Virus record (IMG/VR): IMGVR_UViG_3300044645_002359
Coordinates: 62,001-126,000 of that record
Strand: one strand, 5' to 3'
Length of the DNA stretch: 64,000 bases
Below the pieces are notes generated by a model. It saw only the letters and a list, made by a program, of their open reading frames with translations. It was not told where the DNA came from and searched no databases. Both the position numbers and the translations under genes were made by a program. Numbering within the stretch: the stretch's first letter is position 1; each line of letters starts with the position of its first letter. Shown here one piece after another: positions 6,219-52,151 of this stretch.

Positions 6219-6290
6219 CGGTTAACCGAACGGAAACTGACGGTTTCCTCCCTTGTTTTGCTCCGGCGAAACCGCTATAGTAGGTTCATG
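6219..6290 (+). promoter_or_regulatory. Operator-promoter module copy 1
   Basis: CGGTTAACCG; TTGTTT-17-TATAGT-6-ATG(6288). Confidence 0.8.
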
Positions 6291-6309
6291 AACGAGCCTA
6301 CTTTTACGT

Positions 6310-6807
6310 ATGAAGAGAGCCATTCAAATTAAAGGAAGGGTTTCTCTGCCAGAGGACACTCTTCACCGATTGTTTAAGATTGCGAACAAAATTGTTGTTC
6401 CTTCCAGTTGGACCCTCGGTGAAGTGGGTTCCAGGGCTCAACCCCCTTGGCTTCTACCTCTAGTGGAAGAAGCTTTAGTAAGGTTAAACTCACAAGGATC
6501 CCGTAAGTTTCGGTTCCTGAGTAAGGACTCCCCGGCCATGAGGGAAATCTCGGCAATTGCTTATGGAAAAGGTTCCGTACCGACGCACACGGACCACGTC
6601 TCGGGGTTATCTCTGCTGACTTTCCTTGGTGGTTCTCTTGAAGATAGCGACGGATGTCATCTTGTGGCAGAGGGAGAGTTCTACGCTGGAGGGCAAATGG
6701 TAACCCTTAACGCTGGACAGTCGCTTGTTTTCGACGACAGTGAGCCTCACTCTTGGATGCATAACGGTTACTGGTTTTTTGCTTGCAATGCGCTTGAGAA
6801 AGTTTAG
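6310..6807 (+). CDS. Small 2OG-Fe(II)/DSBH-like oxygenase A
   Basis: PTHTD...GLSLL...LVFDDSEPHSW (HxD...H). Confidence 0.6.
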   Translation: MKRAIQIKGRVSLPEDTLHRLFKIANKIVVPSSWTLGEVGSRAQPPWLLPLVEEALVRLNSQGSRKFRFLSKDSPAMREISAIAYGKGSVPTHTDHVSGLSLLTFLGGSLEDSDGCHLVAEGEFYAGGQMVTLNAGQSLVFDDSEPHSWMHNGYWFFACNALEKV

Positions 6808-7028
6808 CATGGCAAAATACTACCCCTGAAAGCTTTCGTTGAACTTGTGGCAGAAGCCACTTTGCATAACTATTTGAACAGTGGAACCGACCGAGTCACA
6901 GAGCCACACTGGCCATCCGTCATATACGAAATTTCCGAAGTTAAGCTAGAGAGGAAAGTCCGGCGAGGGCCGGAAAGAATGAAAGCAAAGCACTACGAAA
7001 GTTCCAACCAGTAACCAGATACCAATAA

Positions 7029-7610
7029 ATGAAAACGAACAGCGTTCTCTGTCAAATTGACCGGCGCGGTCGCTTGAGCAAGCCCGAAACTCTGAGGGAT
7101 TATGGCAAACTTAGAGACCACATGATTCAGCGACCTTGGGAGTTGCTGAGCGACGAGACTTTTATAGATTTAATTACCGAAAAGGGTTGTACCTTTCACG
7201 GGTGCTTGTTTAAGGGTCTTGATCTCATGGAGCTACAGTACCAGCGTCTTTGCTGGCACACTCAAACCCTCATCGGCGTAGACTTTGATAAGTGTAAAAT
7301 TCACCCGGAGGAAATGACAGACCTTTACTCACACTTGGGCTACCGACCTTGGATTGCCTATCGGACTTTCTCTGACGGGGAATTTCAGGGGAGGAATTCT
7401 TACCGACTGCTGTGGAAAGTCTGCGTCAATTTAAATGTTTCCTACGAACGAACCCATGCTTTCATCAAAGCCTTCGCAGCACTTGCCGGAGAAGGCATCG
7501 CCGACAAACACAGTATGGACCCCAGTCGAATGTGGCAGGGTAGCCGAAAAGGCTTCACCCATTACGACCCGGAATCCCCTTCACTAGACCTGCAATGCTC
7601 AGTACTTTGA
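7029..7610 (+). CDS. Primase/AEP-like domain protein
   Basis: IGVDFD, YRTFS, SYRLLW, DPSRMW resemble prim-pol-like domains. Confidence 0.4.
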   Translation: MKTNSVLCQIDRRGRLSKPETLRDYGKLRDHMIQRPWELLSDETFIDLITEKGCTFHGCLFKGLDLMELQYQRLCWHTQTLIGVDFDKCKIHPEEMTDLYSHLGYRPWIAYRTFSDGEFQGRNSYRLLWKVCVNLNVSYERTHAFIKAFAALAGEGIADKHSMDPSRMWQGSRKGFTHYDPESPSLDLQCSVL

Positions 7611-8113
7611 CCGAAATTACTGTGGTTTCCCGGTACCTCTACGTCACAAGTGAGATGGCAGAAGACCTTGTAAGAGAAGCAAGAAGTTACCCGGAAGAGT
7701 GGTCATTCGGTGCTGTCGACGTGGCGAAACTTCCGGAATCTTGTCAGCACTTGGGGCAACAAGCGATTGAGTCTTTGAACGAAGAGACAAGAGATTTCAC
7801 ATGGAGTCTCGGCGGTCAGTCACATGCAAAACCAGCAATGGCGTTTGGCCGTGGGAGCATCCCTTTCCATATTGACGAAATTACGGGGTTGACTTTGCTG
7901 ATTCTCGTATATTGCCGCCCTTTGCAGTTTAACCAGGCTGCTCACGACAATTTAACTTTGTCCGGTCAATTCTTATCGGAAGACGGGTACACCCCATTGA
8001 CCCTGGGAAAAGCTCTAGTCTTTAACGATTGCAAACCCCACGCCTGGTTGACAAACTCGGCCTGGGCCTTCGCTACGTTCCCTGTCGTAAAGGAGCGCAG
8101 GTACGCTCTCTGA
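7595..8113 (+). CDS. Small 2OG-Fe(II)/DSBH-like oxygenase B (paralog of 6310)
   Basis: PFHID...GLTLL...LVFNDCKPHAW. Confidence 0.6.
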   Translation: MLSTLTEITVVSRYLYVTSEMAEDLVREARSYPEEWSFGAVDVAKLPESCQHLGQQAIESLNEETRDFTWSLGGQSHAKPAMAFGRGSIPFHIDEITGLTLLILVYCRPLQFNQAAHDNLTLSGQFLSEDGYTPLTLGKALVFNDCKPHAWLTNSAWAFATFPVVKERRYAL

Positions 8114-8226
8114 GGCCCTGTAAGAGCCTTCGCTCCGCTCCGCCCCCCGACCCCCTGGCCCAGCTCTGAAGCTCCCCTCTCGGCCTTCTAGGCCCCCTTC
8201 ACAAAGTTCACCCTATTGCCTTAAAA

Positions 8227-8930: not shown

Positions 8931-9002
8931 CGGTAAACCGAACGGAAACTTTCGGCTTCCCACCTTGGCTCTGGCTCGCAAACCAGGTATAGTTGTTGTA
9001 TG
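8931..9002 (+). promoter_or_regulatory. Operator-promoter module copy 2
   Basis: CGGTAAACCG; TTGGCT-17-TATAGT-6-ATG(9000). Confidence 0.85.
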
Positions 9003-11368: not shown

Positions 11369-11440
11369 CGGATAACCGAACCGCTGAAGGCGGTTCACCC
11401 CCTTGTCTCTGAAGAGATGGCACGCTATGATTATAGTATG
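11369..11440 (+). promoter_or_regulatory. Operator-promoter module copy 3
   Basis: CGGATAACCG; TTGTCT-17-TATGAT-6-ATG(11438). Confidence 0.85.
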
Positions 11441-12987: not shown

Positions 12988-12993
12988 GTCAAA

Positions 12994-13086
12994 CGTTCAG
13001 GCTGCTTCGGCAGCCCGGAAGTAGGTGACAAAGGAACGCATTCGTTCAGTCTGTTTACAGGCCGGGATTGTCTCCAAAGGAACGCG
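12994..13086 (+). ncRNA. Tandem glutamine-riboswitch-like (glnA motif) aptamers
   Basis: Two units CGTTCA-stem-...-AAAGGAACGC (12994-13039, 13043-13085); unit 1 has GGCTGC-TTCG-GCAGCC and CGGAAGTAGG. Confidence 0.72.
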
Positions 13087-13908: not shown

Positions 13909-15117
13909 AGAAGGATCAAAAAGAAATAAGTTTAAAACCTCCGATTAAAATTGGCCTAAAAGAGGCTCAAAACCGCAGGGATTTGATGGCGACTATGGCA
14001 GAGATGAGCCAGCACTTACCTAACGTTTCTTCGGAAAAGCAAGAGCTAGTGGCTCAGTTCATGGTAGAACAACTCCGTGGGGCGGCTAACCGAACCGAAC
14101 CGTTCGGTTCTAACCCTGACTCCTAATGGAGACCCAAGCTAAACTAAAATTACCGAAACAACTTCCAATGGTTACCGAATCCGAAATTTCCATTACGTTT
14201 AACAACGAATCTTGGAAGCTCTTGTACGACCTTTTAAAAGTGAGGCAATATTCTCTCGAGCGCGATGTTGCCCGGGCAGACGAAACTGGCTCAATGGACT
14301 TTGCGCAAATTCTCCTGGACGAAGCTGCTGAATGCAAGGAGATTTCCGATCTGATCTCATTTAACATTACTCTCAACAACTTATCAGAAGCCTTTGTAGA
14401 TTAAAGTAAAGTTCACTGTTCACTCGCGAAGCTTTCATGCTATCCCCGAATACAAGGCTACGGTTAGAAAACATTGCAGATAGGATTTCAAAAAACGAAG
14501 AGGTTTCATTCGAAGAAGCCTCGTTCATTCAAAAATGGGCGAACCATAACCGTCACGCTTATGAGATCCTTCAGAGGGCTAGGCGGAGGGCAATATCGGG
14601 GGAGCCTGAGCCGGGGTCGCTTGACGATCTTATCGACGGTATGAACCTCGGCTTTGCAGATCCCTCCTCTCACCTAATCGGTCCTCAATCTCCAGACGAC
14701 CTTGCAAACTTTTTCAAAGCACCACCCTGGCTCAAAAATGACTGATAAACTCCCTGAAGAAAGCCTTGAGCTGTACGACGATTGCTTTCACGTGAAAGAA
14801 AGTGCGTGTAAAACTTGGAATTCTTGTCAGACTGATGGAACCAAACTAGTCACTTCATTGTCAAAACAACTTTGCATTAACGCCACCCGCTTCTACCTGA
14901 AAAATAAACAGGAAACATCCTTAGAAAATGTCAGAACTTACGAAGGAACGGTCGGAGGGAAACTTTGACTGCCGAGAGTAAACTGGAAACCTTGGACCCC
15001 TTAACTCCTTGGTACGAGTTTCTTTCATACTGCGAAGTTTGTCGGAGTCTGGGTGTGACTCCTTCAGTGGGCCGTTTCACTCGCTATCAAAACTACCTGA
15101 AGACAATCAAACAATGA
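13905..15117 (+). CDS. Run of small hypothetical genes (13905, 14126, 14437, ~14738, plus untracked 14965-15117)
   Basis: Coupled ORFs; MLS..TRLRLE.I, YEGTVGGKL and PWYEFLSYCE motifs recall cyanophage hypotheticals. Confidence 0.55.
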
Positions 15118-16058
15118 CAAACGAACTAACCAGCCCCATGTTAGATAGAGCCAAAGGCTGCTTAATCGGACTCGCAATCGGCGATGCCTTGGGTGCGCCA
15201 GTAGAATTTGGCAGTTACGGGTCTTTTGACCCTGTTGTTGGGTTCAGGGATGGAGGACCATTCAACCTTAAAGCGGGCCAATGGACCGATGATACTTCTC
15301 AGGCTTTGTGCTTGGCCGACTCCATTCTGTCCAACAAAGGGTTTAGCCAAGGCGACTTCCTAAACAGGATGATTAATTGGAAGCAGTATGGACACAACAG
15401 CAGTACTGGGAAGTGTTTTGACATTGGAATCGGAACGGCCCATGCTCTCCAGTCTTATAGCAGCACAGGCAAGGTGCCAGTGAATACAAATTCAGGTGGT
15501 AACGGAAACATAATGAGGCTCGCACCGGTTGCTATAGCTTTCTTTAGGGATAACTACAAAACCCAAGAGATTGCCAGCCTGTCGAGTCTAACTACCCATG
15601 GCCACATTTCAGCATTAACTTGCGCGGACTTCCTCAGTGTGATGCTAAGGTCTTATATCGTAAGTAGTGATTGCGAAGGGGACATTACATATAACTGTCA
15701 AACTAACGAGGAAACTTATGAAATTGACCTGTGTAGTGTGACTCTGGAAAGAATAGCGAATGCTGTGACTTCTGAGGAAAGTGAGTGGCATAATGTAAGC
15801 GGATTCTCAACCGACACTTTGTGTGCAGCTTTGTATTGTTTCTTCAACACGGAGTCCTTTGAAGAATGTGTATTGGCTGCGGTAAACCTTGGCGGAGACG
15901 CGGATAGCGTAGGCGCCGTAGCTGGACAAATTGCAGGAGCTTACTACGGGCTTTCCGGTATACCTCAAAGATTCATTGTTGGATTGCAGGACAGCGATAA
16001 GTTTCTGAATTTGGCAGAACAATTATTTAACTTGTATCGAAACAAAGATGAAAACTAA
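15114..16058 (+). CDS. ADP-ribosylglycohydrolase
   Basis: GLAIGDALGAPVE, WTDDT, GNGNIMRLAP, GGDADSVGAVAGQIAGA. Confidence 0.95.
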   Translation: MTNELTSPMLDRAKGCLIGLAIGDALGAPVEFGSYGSFDPVVGFRDGGPFNLKAGQWTDDTSQALCLADSILSNKGFSQGDFLNRMINWKQYGHNSSTGKCFDIGIGTAHALQSYSSTGKVPVNTNSGGNGNIMRLAPVAIAFFRDNYKTQEIASLSSLTTHGHISALTCADFLSVMLRSYIVSSDCEGDITYNCQTNEETYEIDLCSVTLERIANAVTSEESEWHNVSGFSTDTLCAALYCFFNTESFEECVLAAVNLGGDADSVGAVAGQIAGAYYGLSGIPQRFIVGLQDSDKFLNLAEQLFNLYRNKDEN

Positions 16059-17594: not shown

Positions 17595-17666
17595 GGGTTA
17601 ACCGAACCGAAACGGTCGGTCTCCGCCCTTGTTTTCGCTCCGAGAAAACGCTATAGTAAGAGCATG
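17595..17666 (+). promoter_or_regulatory. Operator-promoter module copy 4
   Basis: GGGTTAACCG; TTGTTT-17-TATAGT-6-ATG(17664). Confidence 0.85.
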
Positions 17667-18269
17667 GAACTCAAGTCTACCCTCTCCTCCTCGTTCTTCC
17701 GTCGGTTCTGCCCCGACCCCACCGTGATGTATGATCTTGGCGATCTCCACGCTGAGTTAAACGCTCGCTTCTTCAACGGTGAACTGCCTGTCCTTCCTTC
17801 CGACACTTACTCCGACAAGAACGGCGAGACTCGCACTCGCTTCGGCACCCTAAAGTGGGATGGCCGCATGGGACAGCGCACTCTGGGCACCTACAAGGCT
17901 TCGGCTCGCCGTGGACACGGAACCATCCGCCTGGCCCGCTCGATCGCCTCGGACCCTGTGAAGACCCGCAGCGTTCTTCTGCACGAGATGCTCCACAAGT
18001 ACCTTGACTTCAAAGGTATGGACGACGGTATTCTCGGACACGGCGAGAATTTCGTCACCGAAGCGAAACGCATCAATGAAAGCTGTCAAGCCGCTGGAGT
18101 TGACTACCGTATTCACTTCTACGATGAAGAAGTTACCAAGGACGAACCCTTCGTGATTTCCGAACTTGCTAAGAAAGAGATCTACTGCGGTAAAGACCTC
18201 GATGTAGCTCGCAACATGCAGGCTATTATGAGGGCAGCGTTCGACCAAAAGTTCGAATACTTCCAGTGA
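17664..18269 (+). CDS. SprT-like zinc metalloprotease
   Basis: LN.RFF.G.LP, LLHEMLH, HGENF. Confidence 0.85.
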   Translation: MELKSTLSSSFFRRFCPDPTVMYDLGDLHAELNARFFNGELPVLPSDTYSDKNGETRTRFGTLKWDGRMGQRTLGTYKASARRGHGTIRLARSIASDPVKTRSVLLHEMLHKYLDFKGMDDGILGHGENFVTEAKRINESCQAAGVDYRIHFYDEEVTKDEPFVISELAKKEIYCGKDLDVARNMQAIMRAAFDQKFEYFQ

Positions 18270-18290
18270 GACCTTCGGGTCTCTTTTTAT
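18268..18290 (+). terminator. Intrinsic terminator
   Basis: GAGACC-TTCG-GGTCTC-TTTTT. Confidence 0.8.
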
Positions 18291-18308
18291 TTCACCTTGA
18301 GACAGTAA

Positions 18309-18725: not shown

Positions 18726-20213
18726 ATGACTATGGCAATAGAAAGTACAAAGCAAGCCGCTGCGGCAGTCTGCGATAAAAATACCAAATGCGACAATAGC
18801 TGCTCCGTTGGTGAAACCGTTGTCTGTGACTTACGCTCTCGCTCTGCCCCACGCAGAATTGACCTCGATACACTTTACAAGTGCGACCCGAAAGATTACA
18901 TCGGTTACTTCGCTGACGATTCCTCCTACGACAATCTTATTCAAGAAGACTGCGACGTTTACGTTGCCGGTGTCAAAGTTGTCGCTTTTCGTAAGTCCCT
19001 GTTCCCAAAACTGAAGGAAGGTTCCAAGGGCGACCCAAAGACTTGGGAATACTTCCGCTGGGCAGCCCGCGATCTGTATTCTGACCAGCGCGGTCTGGTT
19101 GCCGGTCGGGAACTTACAACCGATCTCGAAATCAGAGTAACTAATGGTATTCTAAACTTCTTCAAAAAAGCCATTGCTGGGCAAGTCACAGAAGTTGAAG
19201 AGGCTCTTAAAATTGTTGCTCTTTCTCCAGATCATGGTAAGCTTACAGTAAGAATCACCGAAGTCAAGAAAGACTATCCGGAAATTGCCAAAGCTCTTGA
19301 GCCCATCGAAGCCGAACTTCGTAAGAAAACGACGAGCGAAGAAAGAAAAGTAGAGCTGAAGAAAGCAAAGGGAGAAGAACTTGCGAAGTGGTTCCCGACC
19401 TGGTTGACACGAACTTGGGCTAAGGCTGAAAACAAAGTAGAGGCAGCTAAGCTAGGGGACGACAGGTATATCAGCAAGCAGCTGCGTTCAAACAAGTGCT
19501 ATTCTAACGTTCTTGGTGCCTTCGATAGAGGGGCAAGAAATCCTTACGGTCGCTTAACCGCTACTACTCTTAAAAACTACGACGGTTTCGTGAGTCATAC
19601 AGACATCTACCAAACCGCTTGTGCCGCTCTGAAAGAAACCCTAAACACACAAGAAAACCCCCGTTGGGATCGTCTTCACGACCGCTTCGGTAACGTGAAA
19701 GATCCACATTATAACCTTTTCGGTACGGTATTTACCGCCCTCACCTTAAACTGGAATTTCCGCTGTGCTATGCACTATGACGGGAACAATTGCGAAGGCG
19801 GTATTGCCGTTCTTACCGCAATGACTCAAGGCGAGTACGAAGGTCATTACCTTGTATTCCCAGAAATCCGGTGCGCCTTTGATCTTCGTGACGGGGACTT
19901 TATTGCAGGTGACAACCAGGGTTTGATTCATGGCAACACCGCTATGATTCCAAAGACTCCTGATGCGGAAAGAGTATCCTTCGTTTTCTATTCTCGCGAG
20001 CGTATGACCTTGCTTGATGACATGGAGTGCGAGGACTGCCGCCGCGATTTCATGAAATACGCAGCTGAGAACTACACTCAGTACGGTAAAGGTCACAAAA
20101 CCTGGAATGGTGTGTGGCAGGGAATGTGGAAGTCTTCGGAATGGATGGACTTCAAAGAACTTAACGGTGCGGAGCGTTGCTCAAACACCAACTACTGGGG
20201 AACTGAAAATTAA
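18726..20213 (+). CDS. TET/JBP-like 2OG-Fe(II) dioxygenase 1
   Basis: FGTVFTALTLNWNFRCAMHYD, G.Y.G.YLVFPE, HGNT, RVSFVFYSRE: HxD...H triad plus 2OG-binding Arg. Confidence 0.85.
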   Translation: MTMAIESTKQAAAAVCDKNTKCDNSCSVGETVVCDLRSRSAPRRIDLDTLYKCDPKDYIGYFADDSSYDNLIQEDCDVYVAGVKVVAFRKSLFPKLKEGSKGDPKTWEYFRWAARDLYSDQRGLVAGRELTTDLEIRVTNGILNFFKKAIAGQVTEVEEALKIVALSPDHGKLTVRITEVKKDYPEIAKALEPIEAELRKKTTSEERKVELKKAKGEELAKWFPTWLTRTWAKAENKVEAAKLGDDRYISKQLRSNKCYSNVLGAFDRGARNPYGRLTATTLKNYDGFVSHTDIYQTACAALKETLNTQENPRWDRLHDRFGNVKDPHYNLFGTVFTALTLNWNFRCAMHYDGNNCEGGIAVLTAMTQGEYEGHYLVFPEIRCAFDLRDGDFIAGDNQGLIHGNTAMIPKTPDAERVSFVFYSRERMTLLDDMECEDCRRDFMKYAAENYTQYGKGHKTWNGVWQGMWKSSEWMDFKELNGAERCSNTNYWGTEN

Positions 20214-20928: not shown

Positions 20929-22411
20929 TTCGAGTAGCAATAGCGAAAGAATTGCAGTCTAGAGCTGAACCATTGCGGATCGATAGGGGAACCCTTGAAA
21001 ACTGCCCTCGCAGTGAATACATTGGACAATTCCCCAAGACAACAGATTATGACACTGTCATAGACAAAGACTGTGACGTTTACGTCTCAGGTGTGAAAGT
21101 CTTGTCCTTCCGAAAAGCTCTCTTTCCAATTCTTTCCGAGGGTTCTTCCAAACAGAAAGAAACTTGGGACTTTTTCCGAGCAGCTTCAAAAGAAGTTTAT
21201 GGCACCCAAAGAGGTGTCGTTGCGGGCACAGAGTTTACAACTCGTCCCGAGTCACGCTTAACTAAAGGCCAGGTTGCTTTCTTCGCCGGTGCTTCAGTGG
21301 GTTTGATTACAACGCTTCCTCAAGCGCGAGAGGCTCTGGAAAGTTCCAACGAACTCACTAGCAAGACTCTCAAGATCAAGTATATAAAGAAAGACTACCC
21401 AGAACTTGCGGAAAAATGAAGCCCTTGGAGGCAGAAATTCGCACACTGAGCCCCGAAGACCCGAAACTAGAAAGTCTGAGAAACCAGAGAAGGGAACTAC
21501 TTTGGTGTTGGTTTGAACCTTGGTTACTGGAAGTTTGGTTGCCCTCTGAAAACAAAGTAGAAGAAGTCAAAAAAGTTTTAAACACTTACATTAGCTCTCA
21601 GTTAAATTTCAACCATTGCTACAGTAACGTCCTGGGGGCAATTGACCGTGGGGCAAGATTCCCCTATGGTCGTTTGAGCGGAACCACTCAGAGATACTAT
21701 GAGCAGTTCTCTAAATACAGAGACATTTATTACGCGGCCTGCGAAGGTTTCAGGTACAATTTTCCGGAGACCTGGAGCAAAGTTAAAGAAGTAATTTCGA
21801 AGGCTAAAGACCCTAACTACAACTTGTTCGGCACTGCCTTTACGAGCGTAACTCTAAACTTCAATTTTAAGACTGCCTACCACGTTGACAAGAACAACTT
21901 GAAAGGGGGGCTGGCTGTCTTGACTGCGTTCACAAAGGGAGACTATGAGGGCCACTACTTAGTGTTCCCCGAAGTTAAGCTAGCTTTCAACTTGAGAGAC
22001 GGGGACTTTATCGTAGGAGACACTCAAGTCCTACTTCACGGGAACAGCCCCATGACAAAACTCACTGAGGATGCTGAGCGGGTTTCTCTGGTTTTCTACT
22101 CTCGAGAGAATATGACCCGATTGGACGATCTTGATTGTGAAGAATGCCGAAAACAATTCATGAAGTTTTCACTTCAGTCCCTGAAGGAACGGGGCAAAGA
22201 TCACAAAGACTGGAGGGGCGTGTGGCAAGGAATGTGGACTTCTCAGGAGTGGTTAGACTTTCGAAAAGAAAGAAACTTGGAACACTGTTCAAACTCCAAC
22301 TGGCAGCTTTCTTCGCCTTACGAGAATGAAGTTACGAAAGAGATGAAGCTGTTTAAGGACGATCCAGGTGAGGGATGGAAACTCGTACAAGTATTTACAC
22401 AAGGTCGGTAA
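20925..22411 (+). CDS. TET/JBP-like dioxygenase 2, split by a 1-nt frameshift (20925-21419 + 21416-22411)
   Basis: Colinear paralog of 18726; [17 protein letters not shown]; break in A5 run at 21412-21416. Confidence 0.82.
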
Positions 22412-22476
22412 CCGCCCGGAAGCCTTCGGCTTCCTCCCTTGTTTCTGATCCACATAAACGCTATGATTGTTGTATG
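22406..22476 (+). promoter_or_regulatory. Operator-promoter module copy 5
   Basis: CGGTAACCG; TTGTTT-17-TATGAT-6-ATG(22474). Confidence 0.85.
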
Positions 22477-31335: not shown

Positions 31336-31350
31336 TAAAGGGAGAGATCA

Positions 31351-32944: not shown

Positions 32945-32993
32945 CGGTAAACCGCCCTATACACCCAGGCAGGAACACCCTATAATACACTGA
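32945..32993 (+). promoter_or_regulatory. Short variant of operator-promoter
   Basis: CGGTAAACCG-ccc-TATACA-17-TATAAT. Confidence 0.7.
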
Positions 32994-36145: not shown

Positions 36146-37225
36146 ATGACAACAATCCTATACCACCCATTCTCCAAGCTCCACAACCCAACTTACAACC
36201 ACCCGGACAACCCTGCTCGAATTGATGCAATTCTAGAAGCAATCAAGCCGTACCGCACTCAGCGGCCACTGCGCCCAGCCACCTTCGAGGAAATTGCCAC
36301 AGTTCATACGCCAGATTACATCCGCAGCGTCCTCAAACAGCAAGGCCAGAAAGGATCCGCAGGACCCGGAGCACTATTAACTGAACATTCAGTCGATGCT
36401 GCCTTGTGGAGTGCTGGGGCTGCGATTGAAGCTGCCGATGTGGCCATGGGTGAAGATGCCGCCGTAGCACTATGCCGTCCTGCAGGCCATCACGCCCGCC
36501 CCCATACAGGGATGGGTTTTTGCGTATTTAACAACGTTGCCATCGCTGCAGCCCACTGCCTGGCCAAAGGGGCGGAAAGAGTCTTCATCCTGGATTGGGA
36601 TGTCCACCATGGTAATGGCACCCAGGAGATTTTCTACGAGAGCGACAAAGTGTTTTTCTTCTCAATTCATCAGAAGTCGGCTTACCCTTCTTCAGGAACA
36701 AGCGAAGAAATGGGGGATGGGGCCGGACTTGGCTTCAATCGTAACATTGTCTTGGAAGAAGAATCCGACGATAACGATTACCTATTTTGCATCAAGGAAA
36801 TTGTGGTTCCAGTCATTCGAGACTTCGACCCCCAAGTCATCCTAATATCGGCCGGATTTGACGCGCATAGGGATGACCCTCTGTCCAATATGGCAATGAC
36901 GAGTTCCGGTTATGGGGAAATGACTCAGCAAATCTGGGAAATTGCCCAAGAGTTAGATATTGGCTTAGCCCTGATTCTAGAGGGCGGTTACTCAATACAT
37001 TCCCTCGGTGGCTGCATTGCAAGTTGCCTCGATGCCCTGCCAGAACCTACCCTATTTGGGGAGGAAACTACGGGGCCAGACCCCGCCCTCCTAGAGTCAA
37101 TGGCAATGCGATACCGCCACGATTTCGGATTGCTTGACTCTAAGCACCAAGCTGCTATACTAGTAACGATGCGGCAGCTTTGGGAAGAGGTTGCTGGCGT
37201 CGGATTTTATCGGCCCCTTAGTTAA
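36146..37225 (+). CDS. Zn-dependent histone-deacetylase-family enzyme with extra C-terminal segment
   Basis: HPDNPARI, RPAGHHA, GFCVFNN, DWDVHHGNGTQ, SAGFDAH.DDPL, LEGGY. Confidence 0.93.
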   Translation: MTTILYHPFSKLHNPTYNHPDNPARIDAILEAIKPYRTQRPLRPATFEEIATVHTPDYIRSVLKQQGQKGSAGPGALLTEHSVDAALWSAGAAIEAADVAMGEDAAVALCRPAGHHARPHTGMGFCVFNNVAIAAAHCLAKGAERVFILDWDVHHGNGTQEIFYESDKVFFFSIHQKSAYPSSGTSEEMGDGAGLGFNRNIVLEEESDDNDYLFCIKEIVVPVIRDFDPQVILISAGFDAHRDDPLSNMAMTSSGYGEMTQQIWEIAQELDIGLALILEGGYSIHSLGGCIASCLDALPEPTLFGEETTGPDPALLESMAMRYRHDFGLLDSKHQAAILVTMRQLWEEVAGVGFYRPLS

Positions 37226-41673: not shown

Positions 41674-44600
41674 CCATTCGGTTACCCGCCCTTTACAACC
41701 ATCTGGTGACTGCTACAATAGGAACATGACTGACAAAACCCCGCTACAACAACTTGCCGAATGGCAAGAGCTTTCTAATTTCTTTCATTCAACACATAGG
41801 AAAGAGCTTATTTGCCCCGAAAACACACTAACACTTGTTGTTGATTCTTACGAAGATGTTTTAATGGGTAATTGCATTTTGGGGGCCAAGTGTAAAATCA
41901 ATGGCGAAGAGATTGTAAAAGAAGAGACTTTCTGCGTTTGGGACGATCACGATGGAACCCTTGCGATCAAAACTGTAGAAAAGATGATGGCTAGCCTTGC
42001 AAACCGTATCACTCAAGGCCTGGTAGAGGAAACTTGTCGTGTCTTACTAACTCAACCCAATTACGATGGCCTTGGGCAAATGGTTAAAGACGGGCTTATC
42101 TCAAGAGCAAGGCAATGATTGAAACATTTCTTTTTCTCATGGTATACACGGGCATTGTCGGTGCCACTGGGTTCTTAATAGGAAGGGTAATCTACCGAAA
42201 TGAAAAGCAACTCCGAAAGATTGAGACCCGGATCAAGACACGCCCAGACACAGGTTTTGCAAAAGACGCTGAGAATATTCGCAGAGACTGGGATAGAGTT
42301 CTAGGAGTTGTATCACAGAAGAAACCATGAGCAAACGACCTGAATACATCCGCTGCATACAGCACACTGACACGACCTTTTCAAAGCAGTCATGGTGCGG
42401 TTGCCCCTTGAGCAATTTTGACCTCCCTTTCGTAGACATTGACCACGCTGCCTATACTGTTAGGAACGAATCCCGCCTTGTTCCCTGCCCAGACTGCATC
42501 AATGTAATTACTTCGCTGTTTATCCCGCAAGCGAAATGATTGAGAAGATTTGCCTCAAGTGCCGTGAGGTATCTTACGGTCCCGAAAACAGAACGTGCTG
42601 TGGCGAATTGGTTCCGTTCGACTCTTGCGAGCACGGGAAACTTCTAGTCTCCGGAGCAAACGGTTGGAACATGGTTTACCGACACTGGGTCAACCATCCC
42701 ATTTTTGAAGCTGTTAGCCAAGACATGCTCAGAGGCAATAGCGCAAGTGCCCCAGGCCACCTGAATGAGTTTATTCGGCGCCTCCTGGATGACAAAGAAG
42801 CATTACTGGAGCCGAGACCTATCAAGACAGAGGGGTTGCCGTACCCTGAAGATTGCCATCCAAAGGGAGGCTGGGCTTGGTTTTCTACTGACCGGGACGA
42901 TTGGACACAGGACAAACCTCCGGAAGATTTTCTCTTGAAAAAAGTTGGTATGTTGACCGCACTGACCCTGACACAGGGAAGTTCATATACAGCCATTGGC
43001 TCCCTTACTGGGCTATTCCATCAACCGAACTTTCTTGAACATGAGCAAAAGTTGCGGATCCTGCGTCTACTACACCAAGTGGAAAAAGATTCCCTTGTCA
43101 AAATAAACGGCGGCAAAGGTGGAGAGCTAGCTTCCGGGCTATGCGAGTTTCTAGATGGTCGAACCAAGCCAGATTGGGGCCACACTTGTCCCATTGGACC
43201 GGCAAACGCTACGACCGGAACTTGCAAAAACAACTAATATCAAAAGAGTTAAACAATGACGACCAAAATTGACGAAATCTCAAATCGCCCAGACCATAGA
43301 CTTAATTGGATTGCCGAGTTAGGGCGGGACCAAATTCAATTGGACGGGTCATTCACAAGAGGACAACTTTTAGAGCTGGCCCTTGCTATGGGTGGCCAAA
43401 GTTTGGACCCTGGGACCCATAGCATCTCCTACTCTGTAGACCCTACTCAATTCGAACCCTTAGGTGGACCCCTCGTGGTTTACACCGAAGAAATGGCTGC
43501 AGAAGACGATGAGTTACTGGCAAATGTACCTACCCCTCTAAGCACATCAACGGGTGGTCATTTAACCAGGGCACATGTCGATGACTTCCTATCAGAGCAC
43601 CCAACCCGCGAAGATGCCCTGAAGCTCCTACAGGAAATGGGGCAAGTTGATGAACAATGACCCAGACAATGTCTGAAGCACCTACCCCCATTTCCCTGGC
43701 CGACCGTTTGCCTAGTGACCAAGACTGTGACATTGTTGAATGCTCTGCTTGGAAGATGAGACTCTGCTGGCTAGGAAAACCGCTTTATCATGCCGGAAAC
43801 AAACTATGGATCTGGGAGTGGGCGATTGCTCCAGAGACCATGAAACTAGCGCCCTGGCCCCATACTCATTGGCTTCCTGCCGATACCGAAACCTTACCTG
43901 CCCGCAATGACTGACGCAGAAAAAGCCTTAAAATTATTCCAATTGCTCGAAGCAACAGACCCTGACATAGATTGGACAGCCGTACCTGAACTAACCCCAG
44001 AGCAAACGCGACTTGTGACAGTATTAATCGAACAACAAGTTTTAGAGGCTATGGACGAAGGGATGGCCCTTGCGGTAGAAATGATCCGTTTGAGCCCTCC
44101 ACATCTTACCAAAGATGAAATTGCTAACCTAATTGTTAGTAGTATGCACGACCCCAAATGATTGAAGCTGAACCTCGCGAAACGCCAATGCCCGAAGCGT
44201 ACACAAAAGAAGAAATGCGCCAGATGTTTCTGGATCAACTGCAATCGATAGCGTCCTATTGGTCTCAGCTAGGGGGCGTAACCCCGAGAGAAATGTGTGA
44301 CGGTGTCGTATTTTGCGTCTTAAGTGTCTTCGATGGCTGCTCTGGTGGATTCCCTGCTGCCATTGATCTTGCTTTGGCTCCACACCCCGAAGACAAAGAG
44401 TATTACACCTCAAATGGTGAAAACTGGGTAGAACCAGGCCAAGTGATTAACGACGATGTTATGCTACATGATCTATTTTACAATCCTTAAAGAAAATGAA
44501 CGAATCAGCCCCCAAACCAAGTGACCTATCTCCTGCCGCACAGGCGGTGATGAACGCCTACTACATGACACTTGATCACGAGGGACCCAGGGTTTATGAC

Positions 44601-48912: not shown

Positions 48913-48989
48913 CGGTTAACCGAACGGAAGCCTTCGGCTTCCCACCCTTGTTTTCGACCAGCGAAAACGGTATGATTAGCGTATAAATG
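48913..48989 (+). promoter_or_regulatory. Operator-promoter module copy 7
   Basis: CGGTTAACCG; TTGTTT-17-TATGAT; ATG 10 nt after -10. Confidence 0.85.
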
Positions 48990-50069
48990 AAACCTATGAA
49001 ACTCACAAAAGCAACGATTCTTGCACTCACGGTTGCGATGCTACTAACGGCATCACCCACTTTTGCTGCATCTGCCGGTCGTATCGGCGGTAGTAACTTC
49101 CGCAGCCGCTCAAGCTCCCCGAGTTATAGTCGTCCTAGCTCCCCGAGCTACAGCCGTCGTGGTTCTTCCCCGAGCTATAGCAGCCCTAGATCCCCAAGTA
49201 TCAGTAGCCCCAGCCATAGTTACTCGGCACCGAGAACATACACTCCTTTGCCTGTTCTCAGGCCCCCCTACAACCCCCCAAGTCGTTCAAGCACTAACAT
49301 CATCGTCATGCCTGACTTGACTCCAAATGTTGTACCGGCTATCCCATACTCCTTGCCTTCTCGGGTGACTACAGTTAGCCAACAGCCTGCCAACCCTATA
49401 GTTCTTTTGGCTCTGCTTACTTCAGTGGGTGTGGTAATTATTGCCGTCATTCTCTTGTTAGGGGGTTGGGAAGATTTTGTAAGCCCGTGGTTAAGCACCC
49501 AAAAGGAAAAGTATAAGAAACTCACGGTAGTGCGCCAAAGGGTAGCTCTACTCGCTTCTGCTAAAGACATTCAATCTGACCTAATTCGGATGGCCGAACA
49601 AGGGGATACCAACAGTCCGAATGGCCTTGCCAAGATCCTCCAAGAAACAACCCTTGCTCTTCTCAGGCACCCTGATAAGGTAGTCTACGCATGGAGTGAT
49701 AAAAATAGGGAGTCCCTTGACAATGCGGAAGATCTATTTAACCAGTTCTCTATGGAAGAGCGTTCCCGAGCGTCTGAAGAAACTTTAACGAACGTGAACG
49801 GTCGTGTCTTCGAGAGCAAAGTAAAGTCCCGCAAGAAAACTCAGGAGAACGAATACATCCTTGTAAACGTTCTGGTGGTTACCTATGAGAACCTGGACCT
49901 TAAACCGTCAGATTCGCAAGAGAACTTAAAGTCAAATCTGGTGGTCCTGGGATCAATTTCTGCTGAGGACTTGGTCGCCCTTGAGATTATCTGGCAACCA
50001 GAAGATGAGTATGACGTTCTCTCGAAAGAGGAACTCTTGACCTTGTACCCCGACTTGAACATCTTGTGA
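48987..50069 (+). CDS. DUF1517 (FLAP1-like) membrane protein
   Basis: Signal, GRIGG..F, TM, LQETTLALLRHP, EYILV, LEIIWQP..D.LS.EELLTLYPDL. Confidence 0.9.
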   Translation: MKPMKLTKATILALTVAMLLTASPTFAASAGRIGGSNFRSRSSSPSYSRPSSPSYSRRGSSPSYSSPRSPSISSPSHSYSAPRTYTPLPVLRPPYNPPSRSSTNIIVMPDLTPNVVPAIPYSLPSRVTTVSQQPANPIVLLALLTSVGVVIIAVILLLGGWEDFVSPWLSTQKEKYKKLTVVRQRVALLASAKDIQSDLIRMAEQGDTNSPNGLAKILQETTLALLRHPDKVVYAWSDKNRESLDNAEDLFNQFSMEERSRASEETLTNVNGRVFESKVKSRKKTQENEYILVNVLVVTYENLDLKPSDSQENLKSNLVVLGSISAEDLVALEIIWQPEDEYDVLSKEELLTLYPDLNIL

Positions 50070-50080
50070 GGGCCAAGGGG

Positions 50081-50152
50081 CGGTAAACCGCCCCACCCGG
50101 TTCGGTTCTCCACCTTGCTTTCGCCTGGAGAAAACGGTATAATAAAAGTATG
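50081..50152 (+). promoter_or_regulatory. Operator-promoter module copy 8
   Basis: CGGTAAACCG; TTGCTT-17-TATAAT-6-ATG(50150). Confidence 0.88.
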
Positions 50153-50311
50153 GAAAAGACAACTCCCACTGACTTTCGCGCTCTGTGCGCTGAGCTTGCT
50201 TCCCAATTGCAAGGCAGAAAAGATGACGAATACGGCTGGCCTGGAGAGGATCCGGAGCAGGATCTTCTCGATCGCGCCTGGGCCGCCTTGAAAGAGACTG
50301 AGACAAAATAG
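50150..50311 (+). CDS. 53-aa protein (TDFRALCAEL...LLDRA.AAL), not in ORF track
   Basis: Leaderless start from promoter; cyanophage-type motif. Confidence 0.72.
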   Translation: MEKTTPTDFRALCAELASQLQGRKDDEYGWPGEDPEQDLLDRAWAALKETETK

Positions 50312-50319
50312 GAGACAAT

Positions 50320-50955
50320 ATGCAAATTAGATTCATCGGCGATGTACATTGTAAATGGGGACCCTACAAAAAGCTGATTAAGGGTTGTGAACGCTCTCTC
50401 CAAGTGGGAGATTTCGGTGTGGGTTTTATCAACTCCGTGACCCAAAAGCCTTACAGCAATCCCCCTTACGACCACATGGTTAAGGGAGAACACTTCTTCA
50501 TTCGGGGTAACCACGACAATCCAAGTGCGTGTAAAAGGCACCCGTTCTGGGTAAAAGATGGTGGTTCAGTATTCGGCCGCGATGACATCTTTTGTGTTGG
50601 TGGAGCCTTCTCGATTGACAAAGATCGACGGACCGAAAACTACGATTGGTGGCATGATGAGGAATTGTCCTACGGGCAATTATGCAATATCATGGATGCC
50701 TACGAGCTGGTAAAGCCGAAAATTGTAGTCACTCACGAGTGTCCAGACTCGGTGATTTCCCGAGTTTGCCAGGCAAGGGGCATGCACAAGTATGATATCC
50801 CGTCTGTGACTCGAAGATGTTTCGACAATATGCTCGAAATTCACAAACCGGATCTCTGGATCCATGGCCACTGGCATCTAAGTGCGCATACAGTTCACCA
50901 GGGAGTAGAATTTATAGCTCTGGGTGAACTTGATCACGTAGACCTTGACGTTTGA
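50320..50955 (+). CDS. Metallophosphoesterase
   Basis: GDVH, GDFG, GNHD, THECP, HGHWH. Confidence 0.9.
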   Translation: MQIRFIGDVHCKWGPYKKLIKGCERSLQVGDFGVGFINSVTQKPYSNPPYDHMVKGEHFFIRGNHDNPSACKRHPFWVKDGGSVFGRDDIFCVGGAFSIDKDRRTENYDWWHDEELSYGQLCNIMDAYELVKPKIVVTHECPDSVISRVCQARGMHKYDIPSVTRRCFDNMLEIHKPDLWIHGHWHLSAHTVHQGVEFIALGELDHVDLDV

Positions 50956-50975
50956 GGGGTTTACCCCCTCTTTTT
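50954..50975 (+). terminator. Intrinsic terminator
   Basis: GAGGGG-TTTAC-CCCCTC-TTTTT. Confidence 0.7.
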
Positions 50976-51490
50976 ATTACTTGGTCTAAATGAGTTACCC
51001 CGAAATCCTCCATCTCCAAAACTGCCCTCACTGCGGCACCAATCTTGTATCAGCAGAATTGATGATCCCTGAGACTTGCGAACCGGGTGCCTTCCACTCA
51101 CGTCTACTCGGCATTCTTAATGACGGCGTAGTAACCGGTTGGAAATGCCCTAACTGTGACCACACTCTTCCTTAGCCGTGAGGCGCTTACCGTCCGGGGT
51201 ATCAGCTAAACTGGCTGTAGCGTCTCACTCCTAACAATTGACCCCTTCTACCATGGTATGGGTGACATTAATCGCTGTCTTCACTTATGCTGCTTCGCGA
51301 GACCCTAATGTTATCCCATATCTTTTTCTACTCTCTGAGTGGCTGAGTTCTTCACTCTCGGGTATCAAGTATAGTTTGACTTTAAACTCAGATCACTTCT
51401 GGGTAAAGTGGAAAATTAGCAAAAACGCAGACGAAAACGCCCGCAAACTCCCAAAAGAACTCGGTTTAGACAAAAACAAGGACTGGTACG

Positions 51491-52060
51491 ATGACAACAG
51501 TAATTAATCTTTTTGGTGGCTCAGGTTGTGGAAAGTCTACCACCGCCGCTCTGCTTTTTGCTCGAATGAAACTGACCGGGATTCACGTTGAACTCGTAAG
51601 AGAATACGTGAAGTACTGGGCTTGGAACGACCGTAAGGTTAGAGAGTGGGACCAACTTTACTTGCTTGGAAAACAGAGTGCATACGAAAGCATGCTCTAC
51701 GGTAAAGTGGATTACATTGTAACCGATAGCCCAATCTTGCTAGCAGGTATATACCAAGAGTTTCGCTCCAGTGGCAAAGACTCCTACGTAAGCAACGCTG
51801 CTCAAGCTTTCATGGCCCACGCAGAAGAACAAGGTGTGACTTACAAGAACTTTTTCCTGAAGCGCAACAAGCCCTTCGATCCCCGTGGCAGATATGAAAC
51901 AGAAGATCAAGCGAGAGAGGTTGACCGATTTGTATACGATTATCTGTGCAAATACAGCGGGTTTAAGCCGATTGAAATCTCTGGTCCCGACGAGCACAGA
52001 GACGCGGAAATTCTGGGCTACCTTGGCGACATGAACTTCAAGGAACCACCCTCACTGTGA
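51491..52060 (+). CDS. AAA_28 / NadR-like P-loop kinase
   Basis: INLFGGSGCGKST, EYVK, TDSPILL, GRYET. Confidence 0.8.
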   Translation: MTTVINLFGGSGCGKSTTAALLFARMKLTGIHVELVREYVKYWAWNDRKVREWDQLYLLGKQSAYESMLYGKVDYIVTDSPILLAGIYQEFRSSGKDSYVSNAAQAFMAHAEEQGVTYKNFFLKRNKPFDPRGRYETEDQAREVDRFVYDYLCKYSGFKPIEISGPDEHRDAEILGYLGDMNFKEPPSL

Positions 52061-52079
52061 ATTCCACTTAAGGAGAGTT

Positions 52080-52151
52080 CGGTAAACCGCCCTAACCATT
52101 CGGCTTACCCTCCTTGTGCTTACTCCGCAGAAGCGGTATCATATCATTATG
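52080..52151 (+). promoter_or_regulatory. Operator-promoter module copy 9
   Basis: CGGTAAACCG; TTGTGC-17-TATCAT-6-ATG(52149). Confidence 0.85.

Follow-up and report, generated by a model that had tools for sequence, protein, structure and literature searches.

Putative leaderless early-promoter cassettes with covarying hairpins in a large freshwater cyanophage

The stoperators of mycobacteriophage L5 are asymmetric 13-mers that lie outside promoters; in lysogens, a known repressor binds them. Leaderless transcripts occur in the Thermus phage phiYS40 and in the genomes of Actinobacteria and Deinococcus-Thermus; in the cyanobacterial host clade concerned here, leaderless mRNAs are not known to be common. 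The T4-type phages RB49/phi1, T4/PST and KVP40/nt-1 carry promoter-early stem-loops, or PeSLs (Arbiol et al. 2010, PMC2839356; Comeau et al. 2014, PMC4122927).

We analysed a window of 64,000 nucleotides lying inside a 201-kb IMG/VR record, called the phage genome below. Judged by its sequence, the phage is a large freshwater cyanophage, a jumbo phage related to Synechococcus phage S-CBWM1; hints to the host clade come from DUF1517, a Pol-gamma-like polymerase, a glutamine riboswitch and the S-CBWM1 kinship itself. A cassette of about 70 bases, made of a conserved palindrome, a hairpin, a standard bacterial promoter and a start codon at the predicted first transcribed base, is present in about 35 copies, all on the + strand. 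The copies span the small-gene early region (genome 2.6-114 kb) and reappear at 199 kb; no real cassette was found in the late region at 114-199 kb. About 30 other IMG/VR contigs carry the same cassette. A search for the cassette in 185,579 bacterial species genomes returned 0 matches, so that it appears phage-specific.

The cassettes share several properties with PeSLs. Both are repeated composite units filling the stop-to-start intergenic gap (PMC2839356, PMC4122927), and both place a G-run/C-run stem-loop just 5' of a sigma70-type -35/N17/-10 early promoter. In our phage the gaps are wholly occupied by the cassette, the upstream stop codon lying 0-35 nt 5' of the palindrome or being the TAA within it. 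The nt-1 stem consensus A3-4G3-loop-C3T3-4 resembles the AAGGG...CCCTT found here. Both types of cassette sit in ORFan-rich plastic regions, are rare among structural genes, and show site-to-site exchange and flanked insertions. Unlike PeSLs, the present cassettes have neither Shine-Dalgarno nor leader, the ATG being at +1; their block 5' of the -35 is GC-rich and conserved instead of AT-rich; they hold two upstream elements, one of them sequence-conserved (CGG-N4-CCG), plus a covarying spacer dyad; and their hairpins lack T-runs, with putative terminator activity and no breakpoint enrichment. Since the phage, an Aokuangvirus relative whose polymerase is Pol-gamma-like, does not belong to the T4-like group, the likeness is one of analogy, not of shared descent. 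On balance, we read the repeats as PeSL-type cassettes with early promoters for the host sigma factor, which would yield leaderless mRNAs. The cassette would then be a new, leaderless form of the T4-type promoter/stem-loop cassettes rather than an established operator regulon. The geometry, copy number, class-specific distribution, covariation, constraint pattern and cassette swaps reported below were all computed here.

The pattern AACCG-N23-25-TTG-N20-TANNNT matched 9 times in the window, always on the + strand, for 0.08 expected; extended by N6-ATG it still matched 7 times, for 0.00 expected. The palindrome CGGTWAACCG, with at most 1 mismatch, gave 27 strand-hits against 4.7 expected. Nine full and two short copies had been predicted, and all eleven were recovered on the + strand as described. 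The distance from palindrome start to TTG, predicted at 33-35 nt, was remeasured at 34 nt in 7 of the 9 full copies; the two exceptions are 22406 (33 nt) and 48913 (35 nt). The spacer measured 17 nt in 9/9 and the ATG followed the -10 by 6 nt in 7/9, also as claimed. In the short copies the palindrome stands 13 nt 5' of the -35 box (TATACA or TTTACA). The predicted sigma70-type promoter with a start codon at +1 and the self-complementary spacer, which also covaries, hold at the sequence level. The coordinates listed were correct, but the list lacked the degenerate copy at 14083 and most of the genome-wide family. The cassettes of the window are as follows (window positions).

6219-6290, + strand: full cassette; palindrome 6219-6228, -35 TTGTTT at 6253, 17-nt spacer, -10 TATAGT, ATG at 6288; hairpin 2 GGAAACT-GAC-GGTTTCC.
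8931-9002, + strand: full cassette; predicted leaderless ATG at 9000 opening a 153-aa AAA_33 kinase-like protein.
11369-11440, + strand: full cassette; predicted leaderless ATG at 11438 (45 aa); hairpin 2 AACCGC-TGAAG-GCGGTT, with a stem sequence unlike that of other copies.
14083-14150, + strand: degenerate copy; palindrome CGGCTAACCG and hairpin 2 intact, CCCTTG changed to CCCTGA, a AGCTAAACT box where the -10 should be.
17595-17666, + strand: full cassette; predicted leaderless ATG at 17664 opening a 201-aa SprT-like protein, orthologue of S-CBWM1 gp6.
22406-22476, + strand: full cassette; 9-nt palindrome CGGTAACCG, with a TAA that ends the 331-aa Tet/JBP gene upstream; predicted leaderless ATG at 22474 opening a 194-aa exoribonuclease-like protein.
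31266-31353, + strand: full cassette; palindrome TAA doubling as stop codon for the 447-aa gene upstream; ATA at +1, 16-nt leader with AAGGGAGAG, GTG start at 31351.
32945-32986, + strand: short form; palindrome, CCC, TATACA-N17-TATAAT, gene start at 33009; same layout as the 11 S-CBWM1 promoters.
41679-41728, + strand: short form; palindrome CGGTTACCCG, CCC, TTTACA-N16-TACAAT, N6, predicted leaderless ATG at 41726 (130 aa).
48913-48989, + strand: full cassette; hairpin 2 GGAAGCC-TTC-GGCTTCC, spacer dyad TTTTCG-N5-CGAAAA, ATA at +1, ATG at 48987 (+5) opening a 360-aa DUF1517 protein.
50081-50152, + strand: full cassette; predicted leaderless ATG at 50150 (53-aa ORF).
52080-52151, + strand: last full cassette before the late region; predicted leaderless ATG at 52149 opening an 88-aa XRE/HigA-type HTH protein.

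Genome-wide, an ATG stands at +1 in 27 of 34 copies, and ORFs of 45-243 aa open at 24 of these 27, several having Pfam or PHROG domains that begin at residue ~1. Copies whose gene starts further 3' mostly have ATA or AGT at +1, and the tRNA-driving copy at genome 3785 has GTG. The ATG claimed at +1 of the 6219 copy is present but opens 14 codons only, the gene starting at 6310; the orthologues L009 and L023 have ATA there. In a single RNA run, kept as contigs, a relative's RNA, or contaminating DNA, spans genes together with whole cassettes. What we say on the polymerase involved, the transcription start, translation without a leader and the roles of the structures is inferred. Carrying its primary sigma factor, the RNA polymerase of the host would recognise the -35 (TTGTTT) and the -10 (TATRAT) on either side of the 17-nt spacer, and would start transcription 7 nt past the -10, on the A of the ATG; because of this start position, the first gene of each unit would be translated from a leaderless mRNA. 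Likewise, in phiYS40, Actinobacteria and Deinococcus-Thermus the start codon coincides with the transcription start at a fixed 6-7 nt after the -10. The leaderless genes of phiYS40 are, however, middle or late ones with -10-only promoters, whereas here an early class with full -35 and -10 is concerned.

The arms of hairpin 2 and of the spacer dyad were found to covary. Arm-swap z-scores were -8.5 for hairpin 2 and -6.9 for the spacer dyad on 70 unique modules, and -4.3 and -5.6, respectively, on the phage genome alone. Two-sided changes affect 6 of the 7 pairs of hairpin 2, and the true register of the spacer dyad is 82% paired against 28-55% when slid. In the pairing test, 76.7% of cells were paired, against 35-47% when slid, and two-sided changes numbered 89, whereas shuffles gave 41 +/- 7.5 and none of the 500 reached 89. 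Part of the apparently compensatory differences between orthologues are whole-cassette swaps, not stepwise substitutions. Orthologue divergence was low in the palindrome (0.06), -35 (0.07), -10 (0.00), discriminator (0.07) and ATG (0.03), and high in the hairpin 2 region (0.21) and spacer (0.27); the codon yardstick was 0.06 for positions 1+2 and 0.18 for position 3. Where hairpin 2 and the spacer dyad covary, the CGG-N4-CCG core and the CGGTT of the proximal element are instead conserved as sequence. Fold stability was only modestly better than in shuffles (z from +0.3 to -2.5), and RNAalifold recovered only the invariant CGG/CCG core.

On this covariation, the proximal element is best described as the 3' arm of a hairpin and not as a degenerate second operator. 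The predicted tandem sites survive as two elements that contain CGGTT and lie about two helical turns from each other, but the proximal one is a covarying hairpin arm. The predicted binding of a dimeric regulator to it finds no support in that form, as a dimeric DNA-binding protein would not select for such covariation. Wobble-pair asymmetry did not single out the + strand, so that action at the RNA level remains putative. The cassette hairpins have no T-run, in contrast to the canonical terminators of the same phage, which makes a terminator role weak at best. Most likely, the hairpins and spacer dyad would act on read-through transcripts from the upstream unit, either as weak attenuators or as 3'-end or processing structures insulating neighbouring units.

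Comparison with S-CBWM1 (MG450654) suggests how the cassette arose. Its genome has 11 copies of a homologous palindrome, GGGG-CGGTAAACCG-CCC, in rigid register before a -35/N17/-10 promoter, one of them preceding the orthologous sigma gene, and it has both early and late promoter classes, with an identical late box GGGTAAARNT. These early promoters are unannotated in MG450654, and we found no description of them in the literature searched. By contrast with our phage, S-CBWM1 carries the short form alone: 3 nt separate the palindrome from a TTTACA -35, and TAAGCT or TAAAGT serves as the -10. Its transcripts are predicted not to be leaderless but to have leaders 20-60 nt long, which often begin with a CTGACT-N3-AGTCAG hairpin. 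The block 5' of the -35 may descend from one GGGCGG-N4-CCGCCC stem-loop directly next to the promoter, which would have been duplicated 21-22 nt upstream in the clade of our phage. Two-palindrome copies, at genome 40374/40396 and 199265/199286, could be surviving intermediates. The proximal copy would then have become the hairpin, CGGTT being kept as sequence and the remainder selected for base pairing.

Three other explanations were weighed against host-sigma promoter cassettes. A bound factor at the palindrome and CGGTT is possible, since the core and the proximal CGGTT are sequence-conserved, tied to one promoter class and in helical phase. Extended to an operator regulon, the idea becomes rather unlikely: a phage, virion or host protein would bind CGGTWAACCG near -64.5 and CGGTT near -45, on one helix face (or the palindrome at -43.5 in short forms), and the early class would be switched jointly, e.g. 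off once late transcription starts. Such a factor would suit the conserved core and CGGTT better than a plain hairpin does. CGG/CCG occurs in 63-66 of 66 copies; in a set of 78 copies picked without regard to the palindrome, 68 have G-11 and 69 have T-8. No pairing covariation is seen in the palindrome's flanks. The 21-22 nt phasing is fixed, double-palindrome copies exist, the element is strictly confined to the early class, the palindrome persists across two lineages with polymerases ~57% identical, and the last cassette itself drives the XRE-type HTH gene. L5 stoperators and the SAS/ESAS of cluster K similarly comprise dozens of short one-orientation sites in tight intergenic gaps, adjoining start and stop codons across the phage genome; the sites here differ from stoperators in being integral to a promoter cassette, with no repressor known and no lysogeny module seen. 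However, protein binding leaves unexplained that the partner arm of the proximal element covaries and occupies two registers. Variation in the palindrome is centred on the middle four bases, as in a tetraloop, and a phage-made activator could not serve the first post-infection transcripts. The four regulators put forward (20617, 34557, 35041, 52149) all lack homologues in S-CBWM1, even though that phage has the palindrome in the equivalent position close to its promoters. We also found no small DNA-binding protein common to both phages.

Far less probable still is that the phage sigma factor, instead of the host primary sigma, reads the cassette, with the C-rich block and CGGTT as an extended recognition element. 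Its gene (genome 199336-199953) lies behind a palindrome promoter in both phages, so that one cassette would drive the phage's own sigma factor and autoregulation is feasible; moreover, the CCC before TTG is near-invariant (71-76 of 78 copies), exceeding the needs of a host -35. But the hexamers and 17-nt spacing are textbook primary-sigma features, unmodified host polymerase must read some class at infection and the cassette class drives the sigma gene, and the -35/-10 differ between lineages (TTTACA/TAAGCT in S-CBWM1, TTGTTT/TATRAT here) while the palindrome is unchanged. Its natural target would be the separate late box GGGTAAARNT, which has no -35 and which the phage sigma factor probably reads. 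This box occurs 18 times on the + strand against 2 on the -, 15 of the 18 being in genome 114-199 kb, mostly ~30 nt 5' of start codons. The late region uses canonical T-run terminators, where palindrome and CGGTT elements are never found. It is doubtful, finally, that the cassette is mainly a recombination device, i.e. a portable homology block, possibly a recombinase or nuclease target, by which ORFan genes enter and leave the early region, its promoter letting any inserted gene be expressed. PeSL mini-circles offer a precedent (PMC2839356), and few genes of the early region have counterparts in S-CBWM1, in contrast to a collinear late region. Nevertheless, purifying selection on the -35, -10, discriminator and ATG indicates that the cassettes are constrained first of all by expression. 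They have no linked recombinase, and several HNH nucleases of the genome are not tied to them. Comparing module boundaries between relatives, we found no enrichment of indel breakpoints at cassettes (17 of 75, for ~22% expected from gene boundaries), so that the predicted recombination points are borne out only by individual swaps and insertions.

As promoter cassettes that the host sigma factor would read, the repeats may still provide, through their ~70 shared bases, homology for cassette exchange, like the PeSLs of T4-type phages. Three of 12 orthologous positions hold the cassette, with its variable parts, of another paralogue; in relative L020, the swapped one differs by 1 mismatch from the genome-24142 cassette and by 16 from its positional orthologue. 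L020 also has a 2.8-kb insertion flanked by a duplicated palindrome (genome 58720), and L042 a 508-bp insertion at genome 36905. Window 50066-50315 (cassette and ORF) is replaced by other DNA in L026, L043 and L007, and 52061-52149 by 287 other bases in one relative (run X5). Many assembly contigs match the cassette only, then diverge or branch.

The cassette analysed here is composed of a palindrome, CGGTWAACCG (core CGG-N4-CCG), a second stem-loop (hairpin 2), a -35 box, a spacer carrying a dyad, a -10 box and an ATG at the predicted +1. Every position and every element of layout put forward in the original prediction was borne out by inspection of the window sequence. In the nine full copies (long form) the palindrome begins 34 nt before the TTG of the -35 box in 7 cases, 33 nt in 1 and 35 nt in 1, and the promoter spacer is 17 nt in 9/9. 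In the two short copies it begins 13 nt before a TATACA or TTTACA -35 box, and the copy at window position 41679 is also leaderless. One degenerate copy, at window 14083, was absent from the original list. Searching the window for the AACCG half of the palindrome followed by 23-25 nt, TTG, 20 nt and TANNNT, 9 matches were obtained, all on the + strand, against 0.08 in shuffled sequences; the same promoter pattern extended by N6-ATG was matched 7 times in the window, for 0.00 expected. The combination of a TTGTTT -35 box, a 17-nt spacer and a TATRAT -10 box was found in 9 copies in the window and in about 35 across the genome, the 201-kb IMG/VR virus record that contains the window as bases 62,001-126,000 and is estimated to be 71% complete.

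All of the approximately 35 genomic copies are located on the + strand, between 2.6 and 114 kb, plus one double-palindrome copy at 199.3 kb. Genome-wide detection yielded no genuine cassette in the late region (114-199 kb), and detector matches at genome positions 187218 and 38952 were rejected as cassettes. The cassette was also found in about 30 further IMG/VR contigs of up to 279 kb, and the whole-cassette pattern had 0 matches among 185,579 bacterial and archaeal species genomes. A search of Rfam assigned no family to the cassettes, and a literature search returned no paper giving the 10-mer as a regulatory site. The cassette wholly fills its intergenic gap: the upstream stop codon lies 0-35 nt before the palindrome or is the internal TAA of the latter, and the gene begins at +1. 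Judged on sequence, the cassette is a genuine promoter element spread across the phage family, and its reading as a promoter with a leaderless start is well supported.

A core could be recognised in 34 cassettes; in 27 of them an ATG lies exactly 6 nt after the -10 box, and 24 of these 27 ATGs at +1 open ORFs of 45-243 aa. In several leaderless ORFs, domain matches start right at the N-terminus (AAA_33 kinase, SprT-like, exoribonuclease-like and XRE HTH). In the copies whose gene starts further downstream, the triplet at +1 is mostly ATA or AGT. At genome 3785 it is GTG, in a cassette driving a tRNA that lies some 90 nt further on. The ORF opened by the ATG at window 6288 is just 14 codons long, and two orthologues have ATA at that position. 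The ATG at +1 is lost where the gene starts downstream, so its G is preserved where translation has to begin at that codon. Across the whole genome, Shine-Dalgarno sequences are little used. That the start codon coincides with the predicted transcription start and opens real genes is a well supported reading, which predicts leaderless mRNAs; in the cyanobacterial host, this mode of translation appears to serve about two dozen early genes. Leaderless translation is thought to be minor in cyanobacteria. If the leaderless early genes hold, leaderless initiation would be efficient during infection.

The cassette combines elements conserved in sequence with elements conserved in pairing. Divergence between orthologous cassettes was 0.06 in the palindrome, 0.07 in the -35 box, 0.00 in the -10 box, 0.07 in the discriminator and 0.03 in the ATG, with 0.06 at codon positions 1+2. 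In the hairpin-2 region and the spacer it reached 0.21 and 0.27, respectively, versus 0.18 at third codon positions, and self-complementarity was kept. We selected 78 cassettes by promoter and spacer dyad only, the palindrome not being used, and the palindrome was still found at -34 (counted from the TTG) in about 80% of them. The proximal element CGGTTYNC-N-CCC, which abuts the TTG, is at least as conserved as the palindrome (G-11 in 68/78, T-8 in 69/78 and CCC in 71-76/78). Within the palindrome the outer CGG/CCG are nearly invariant and the four central bases vary (TTAA, TAAA, CTAA, TAAG, GAAA, CTAC, TTTC and others). The palindrome starts 34 nt (13 nt in the short form) ahead of the -35 box, and the CGGTT sequences at -34 and -12 are 22 bp apart.

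Pairing was assessed with an arm-swap test, in which the own arms of each cassette were compared with arms taken from other cassettes. The resulting z values were -8.5 for hairpin 2 and -6.9 for the spacer (-4.3 and -5.6, respectively, for this genome alone), and the palindrome flanks showed no pairing effect (z = +0.6). The 3' end of hairpin 2 is 5-7 nt from the -35 box, and the stem occurs as GGAAGCC/GGCTTCC, CTAAACC/GGTTTAG, GGAAACC/GGTTTCC, GAACCG/CGGTTC or AACCGC/GCGGTT, in two registers. An RNAalifold consensus of 66 aligned cassettes recovered only the invariant CGG/CCG pairs; because of the two registers of hairpin 2, it was set aside and the named structure (hairpin 2 plus spacer dyad) was scored instead, with 76.7% of cells paired versus 35-47% when slid. 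The spacer dyad taken separately is 82% paired in register versus 28-55% when slid, with T-A and C-G alternating at pairs 7:17 and 8:16. Two-sided changes numbered 89 versus 41 +/- 7.5 in shuffles, none of the 500 shuffles being as high, and were found at 6 of the 7 pairs of hairpin 2 and 6 of the 9 pairs of the spacer dyad; some differences between orthologous cassettes are swaps of the whole cassette. Folding energy was just modestly better in the cassettes than in shuffled sequences, a weak result that we left out of the evidence, and the asymmetry of wobble pairs gave contradictory results and did not identify the acting strand. We know of no textbook explanation for a covarying dyad within a promoter spacer, and this dyad would be cheap to test by mutation.

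These data bear directly on the original proposal of an operator regulon, in which a dimeric transcription factor would bind tandem sites. That model is partly supported. Many promoters do have a palindromic site at a constant place in helical phase, and its invariant core is conserved in sequence, restricted to one promoter class and kept across lineages. The partner arm of the proximal element and the spacer dyad, on the other hand, vary by two-sided compensatory changes, a kind of variation that does not come from protein contacts. A symmetric DNA-binding dimer would not select complementary changes, which argues that hairpin 2 and the spacer dyad are under selection for intrastrand pairing. 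The proximal site thus fails as the degenerate operator it was taken for, its partner arm being the one with compensatory changes, and the distal core, being invariant, is silent on protein contacts versus pairing. None of the four regulator candidates proposed, at window 20617, 34557, 35041 and 52149, has a homologue in Synechococcus phage S-CBWM1, the nearest isolated phage (all E > 0.1). The last of them, an XRE/HigA-type HTH protein of 88 aa (window 52149-52415), is the product of the leaderless gene that comes first behind the final cassette ahead of gyrase A. Among the proteins common to both phages, the sigma factor excepted, no evident DNA binder was found; one of the common proteins (89 aa, window 5943-6212) matches a winged helix weakly and was rejected as a DNA binder because it is strongly acidic.

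The alternative that the repeats act as recombination points was examined by comparing module boundaries between relatives. Clear cases of exchange or insertion at cassettes were found. In the related contig L020, a 2.8-kb insertion is bounded by a duplicated copy of the palindrome of genome 58720, and a second one, L042, carries a 508-bp insertion at genome 36905. The segment 50066-50315 of the window (a cassette and a 53-aa ORF) is replaced in three relatives, window 52061-52149 is replaced in sequencing run X5, and at 3 of 12 orthologous cassette positions the variable parts are those of another paralogue. Cassette exchange does happen in these individual cases. Over all breakpoints, no enrichment at cassettes was found (17/75, against roughly 22% expected from gene boundaries alone), and the comparisons did not single out the cassettes as hotspots.

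The closest described system is the promoter-early stem-loop (PeSL) cassette of T4-type phages, in which a stem-loop and a sigma70-type early promoter fill intergenic gaps in plastic regions and mediate shuffling, the stem-loop terminating or attenuating upstream transcription in a reporter assay (RB49) (PMC2839356, PMC4122927). The present cassette has the same architecture as far as sequence can tell: a sigma70-like -35/N17/-10 consensus repeated many-fold, a stem-loop directly 5' of the promoter (hairpin 2 or, in the short form, GGGCGG-N4-CCGCCC abutting the -35 box), an extent covering the whole gap between the stop codon before it and the start codon after it, and copies concentrated in a plastic, ORFan-rich early region with none in the late region. 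It differs in its start, which has neither leader nor Shine-Dalgarno sequence whereas PeSLs end 3' with a Shine-Dalgarno sequence and a start codon; in the block 5' of the -35 box, GC-rich and conserved (CGGTTYNC-N-CCC) instead of AT-rich; in its spacer dyad; and in lineage, its carrier being a relative of S-CBWM1 and not a T4-like myovirus. The likeness to PeSL is functional and not by descent. PeSL-like architecture and cassette swapping are found outside T4-like phages, which suggests that portable "promoter plus insulator" units evolved convergently, as a means that large phages generally use to reshuffle their accessory genes.

As the hairpins precede the transcription start of their own cassette, any action they have must be at the DNA level or within transcripts that read through from the preceding unit. 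They lack the T-runs typical of the canonical terminators of this phage, and a generic terminator scanner takes hairpin 2 followed by TCCCTTGTTT under lenient rules only. Contigs from an RNA library (one metatranscriptome, assembled), in which DNA carry-over is possible, traverse whole cassettes. We favour a role of the hairpins as weak attenuators, or as 3'-end or processing structures that would insulate neighbouring units. It seems rather unlikely that the spacer dyad and the invariant CGG-N4-CCG go beyond promoter plus stem-loop and form a structure-dependent switch common to this cyanophage family (S-CBWM1 and its jumbo relatives). In such a switch, a hairpin, cruciform or read-through RNA fold recognised by some factor could couple upstream read-through to initiation; alternatively, read-through RNA could be cleaved just before the AUG, so that primary and processed transcripts would both be leaderless.

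The short form (GGGCGG-N4-CCGCCC followed directly by the -35 box) is a minority in this genome and the sole form in S-CBWM1, where 11 such promoters have an equally rigid register. Double palindromes 21-22 nt apart are found at genome 40374/40396 and 199265/199286. The long form looks like a duplication whose proximal copy would have retained CGGTT and acquired another partner arm. The proximal CGGTTTCC has a different part in one sub-clade, where it supplies the loop and 5' arm of a hairpin, GGGCGG-TTTC-CCGCCC. The early promoters of S-CBWM1 (11208, 17581, 23073 and 28447 in its sequence, L047) also differ in being directly followed by a conserved CTGACT-N3-AGTCAG hairpin, at the predicted 5' end of the transcript; this hairpin has no counterpart in the window's clade because transcripts there are predicted to begin at the ATG.

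The late region (114-199 kb) holds larger genes than the early region and a second promoter-like box, GGGTAAARNT. It was detected 18 times on the + strand versus 2 on the - strand of the genome, 15 of the 18 within 114-199 kb and, in most cases, some 30 nt ahead of a start codon, and 13 versus 1 times in S-CBWM1. Its positions include the following:

Window 3199: GGGTAAARNT box
Window 4884: GGGTAAARNT box
Window 54702: GGGTAAARNT box
Window 59906: GGGTAAARNT box
Window 60721: GGGTAAARNT box
Genome 114-199 kb (L054-L057, pieces of the genome): further copies

This box is probably a late class read by the phage sigma factor. The latter is encoded at genome 199336-199953 (L057:13336-13953); it belongs to PHROG 351, has a weak Sigma70_r2 match and is the orthologue of S-CBWM1 gp142. 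In both phages the sigma gene is located directly behind a palindrome promoter, which in this genome is the double-palindrome copy. This position suggests a cascade, in which an early class read by the host would yield the phage sigma factor, which would in turn read the late class. Canonical intrinsic terminators (GC-rich stem followed by T5-T9) were found at window 18268-18293 and at about 138.4, 154.4 and 194.6 kb of the genome. The confinement of the cassettes to the small-gene early region, with the other box and terminators in the late region, indicates that the cassette marks one promoter class. A third recurring box, AGCTAAACT, is present at window 14137, 51204, 54741 and 56517 (6 on the + strand and 0 on the - strand of the genome), 17-57 nt before some start codons, and in the degenerate cassette at 14083 a copy stands in place of the -10 box; this box may represent a middle class. 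The result is a map of early, late and possibly middle promoters, ready for testing, that covers both S-CBWM1, an isolate with none of these promoter classes annotated in its record, and an uncultivated family of large freshwater cyanophages.

All genes of the genome are transcribed rightward. About 75 proteins, in conserved order, are common to the genome and S-CBWM1 at 25-65% identity; the late region is collinear and the early region has few genes in common. S-CBWM1 belongs to Aokuangvirus; it has a Pol-gamma-like polymerase and encodes sigma factors of its own. Source runs carrying the window sequence are lake and freshwater metagenomes. The predicted gene content fits a cyanophage: Pol-gamma-like polymerase, gyrase A, DUF1517, a glutamine riboswitch and a DNA hypermodification set. 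The annotated genes of the last set and the unusual accessory genes are as follows (window coordinates):

18726-20213, 21416-22411 and 27786-28802: two Tet/JBP-type 2OG-Fe dioxygenases and an amino-acid:DNA transferase (ADDT)
15009-16058: ADP-ribosylglycohydrolase, unusual accessory gene
29928-31271: PAP2 phosphatase-domain protein, unusual accessory gene
36146-37225: histone-deacetylase-family enzyme, unusual accessory gene
48987-50069: DUF1517 protein (cyanobacterial/plastid family), unusual accessory gene

The dioxygenases and the ADDT suggest that the phage DNA may carry hypermodified bases. A protein search with the DUF1517 gene returned no close genome locus. The glutamine riboswitch aptamer (Rfam RF01739, 41.3 bits for a gathering score of 35) is located at window 12992-13042 on the + strand, and the first ORF of at least 60 aa after it begins at window 13241. 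Riboswitches of this class occur chiefly in cyanobacteria and cyanophages.

The first 20 kb of the genome (L050, genome 1-20000) carry 35 tRNA genes, and 3 more lie at window 3834-5905; a 4-base anticodon is predicted for one call (L050 2165-2237). CTTTCGC-TTCG-GCGAAAG-type hairpins are present between tRNA genes and cassettes, and in this tRNA-rich stretch some cassettes drive tRNAs, not proteins. Finally, the small acidic protein of window 5943-6212 is homologous (34% identity, E = 1e-5) to a + strand ORF of S-CBWM1, L047:30817-31035, at the site of which GenBank gives gp46 on the - strand; that annotation is probably on the wrong strand.
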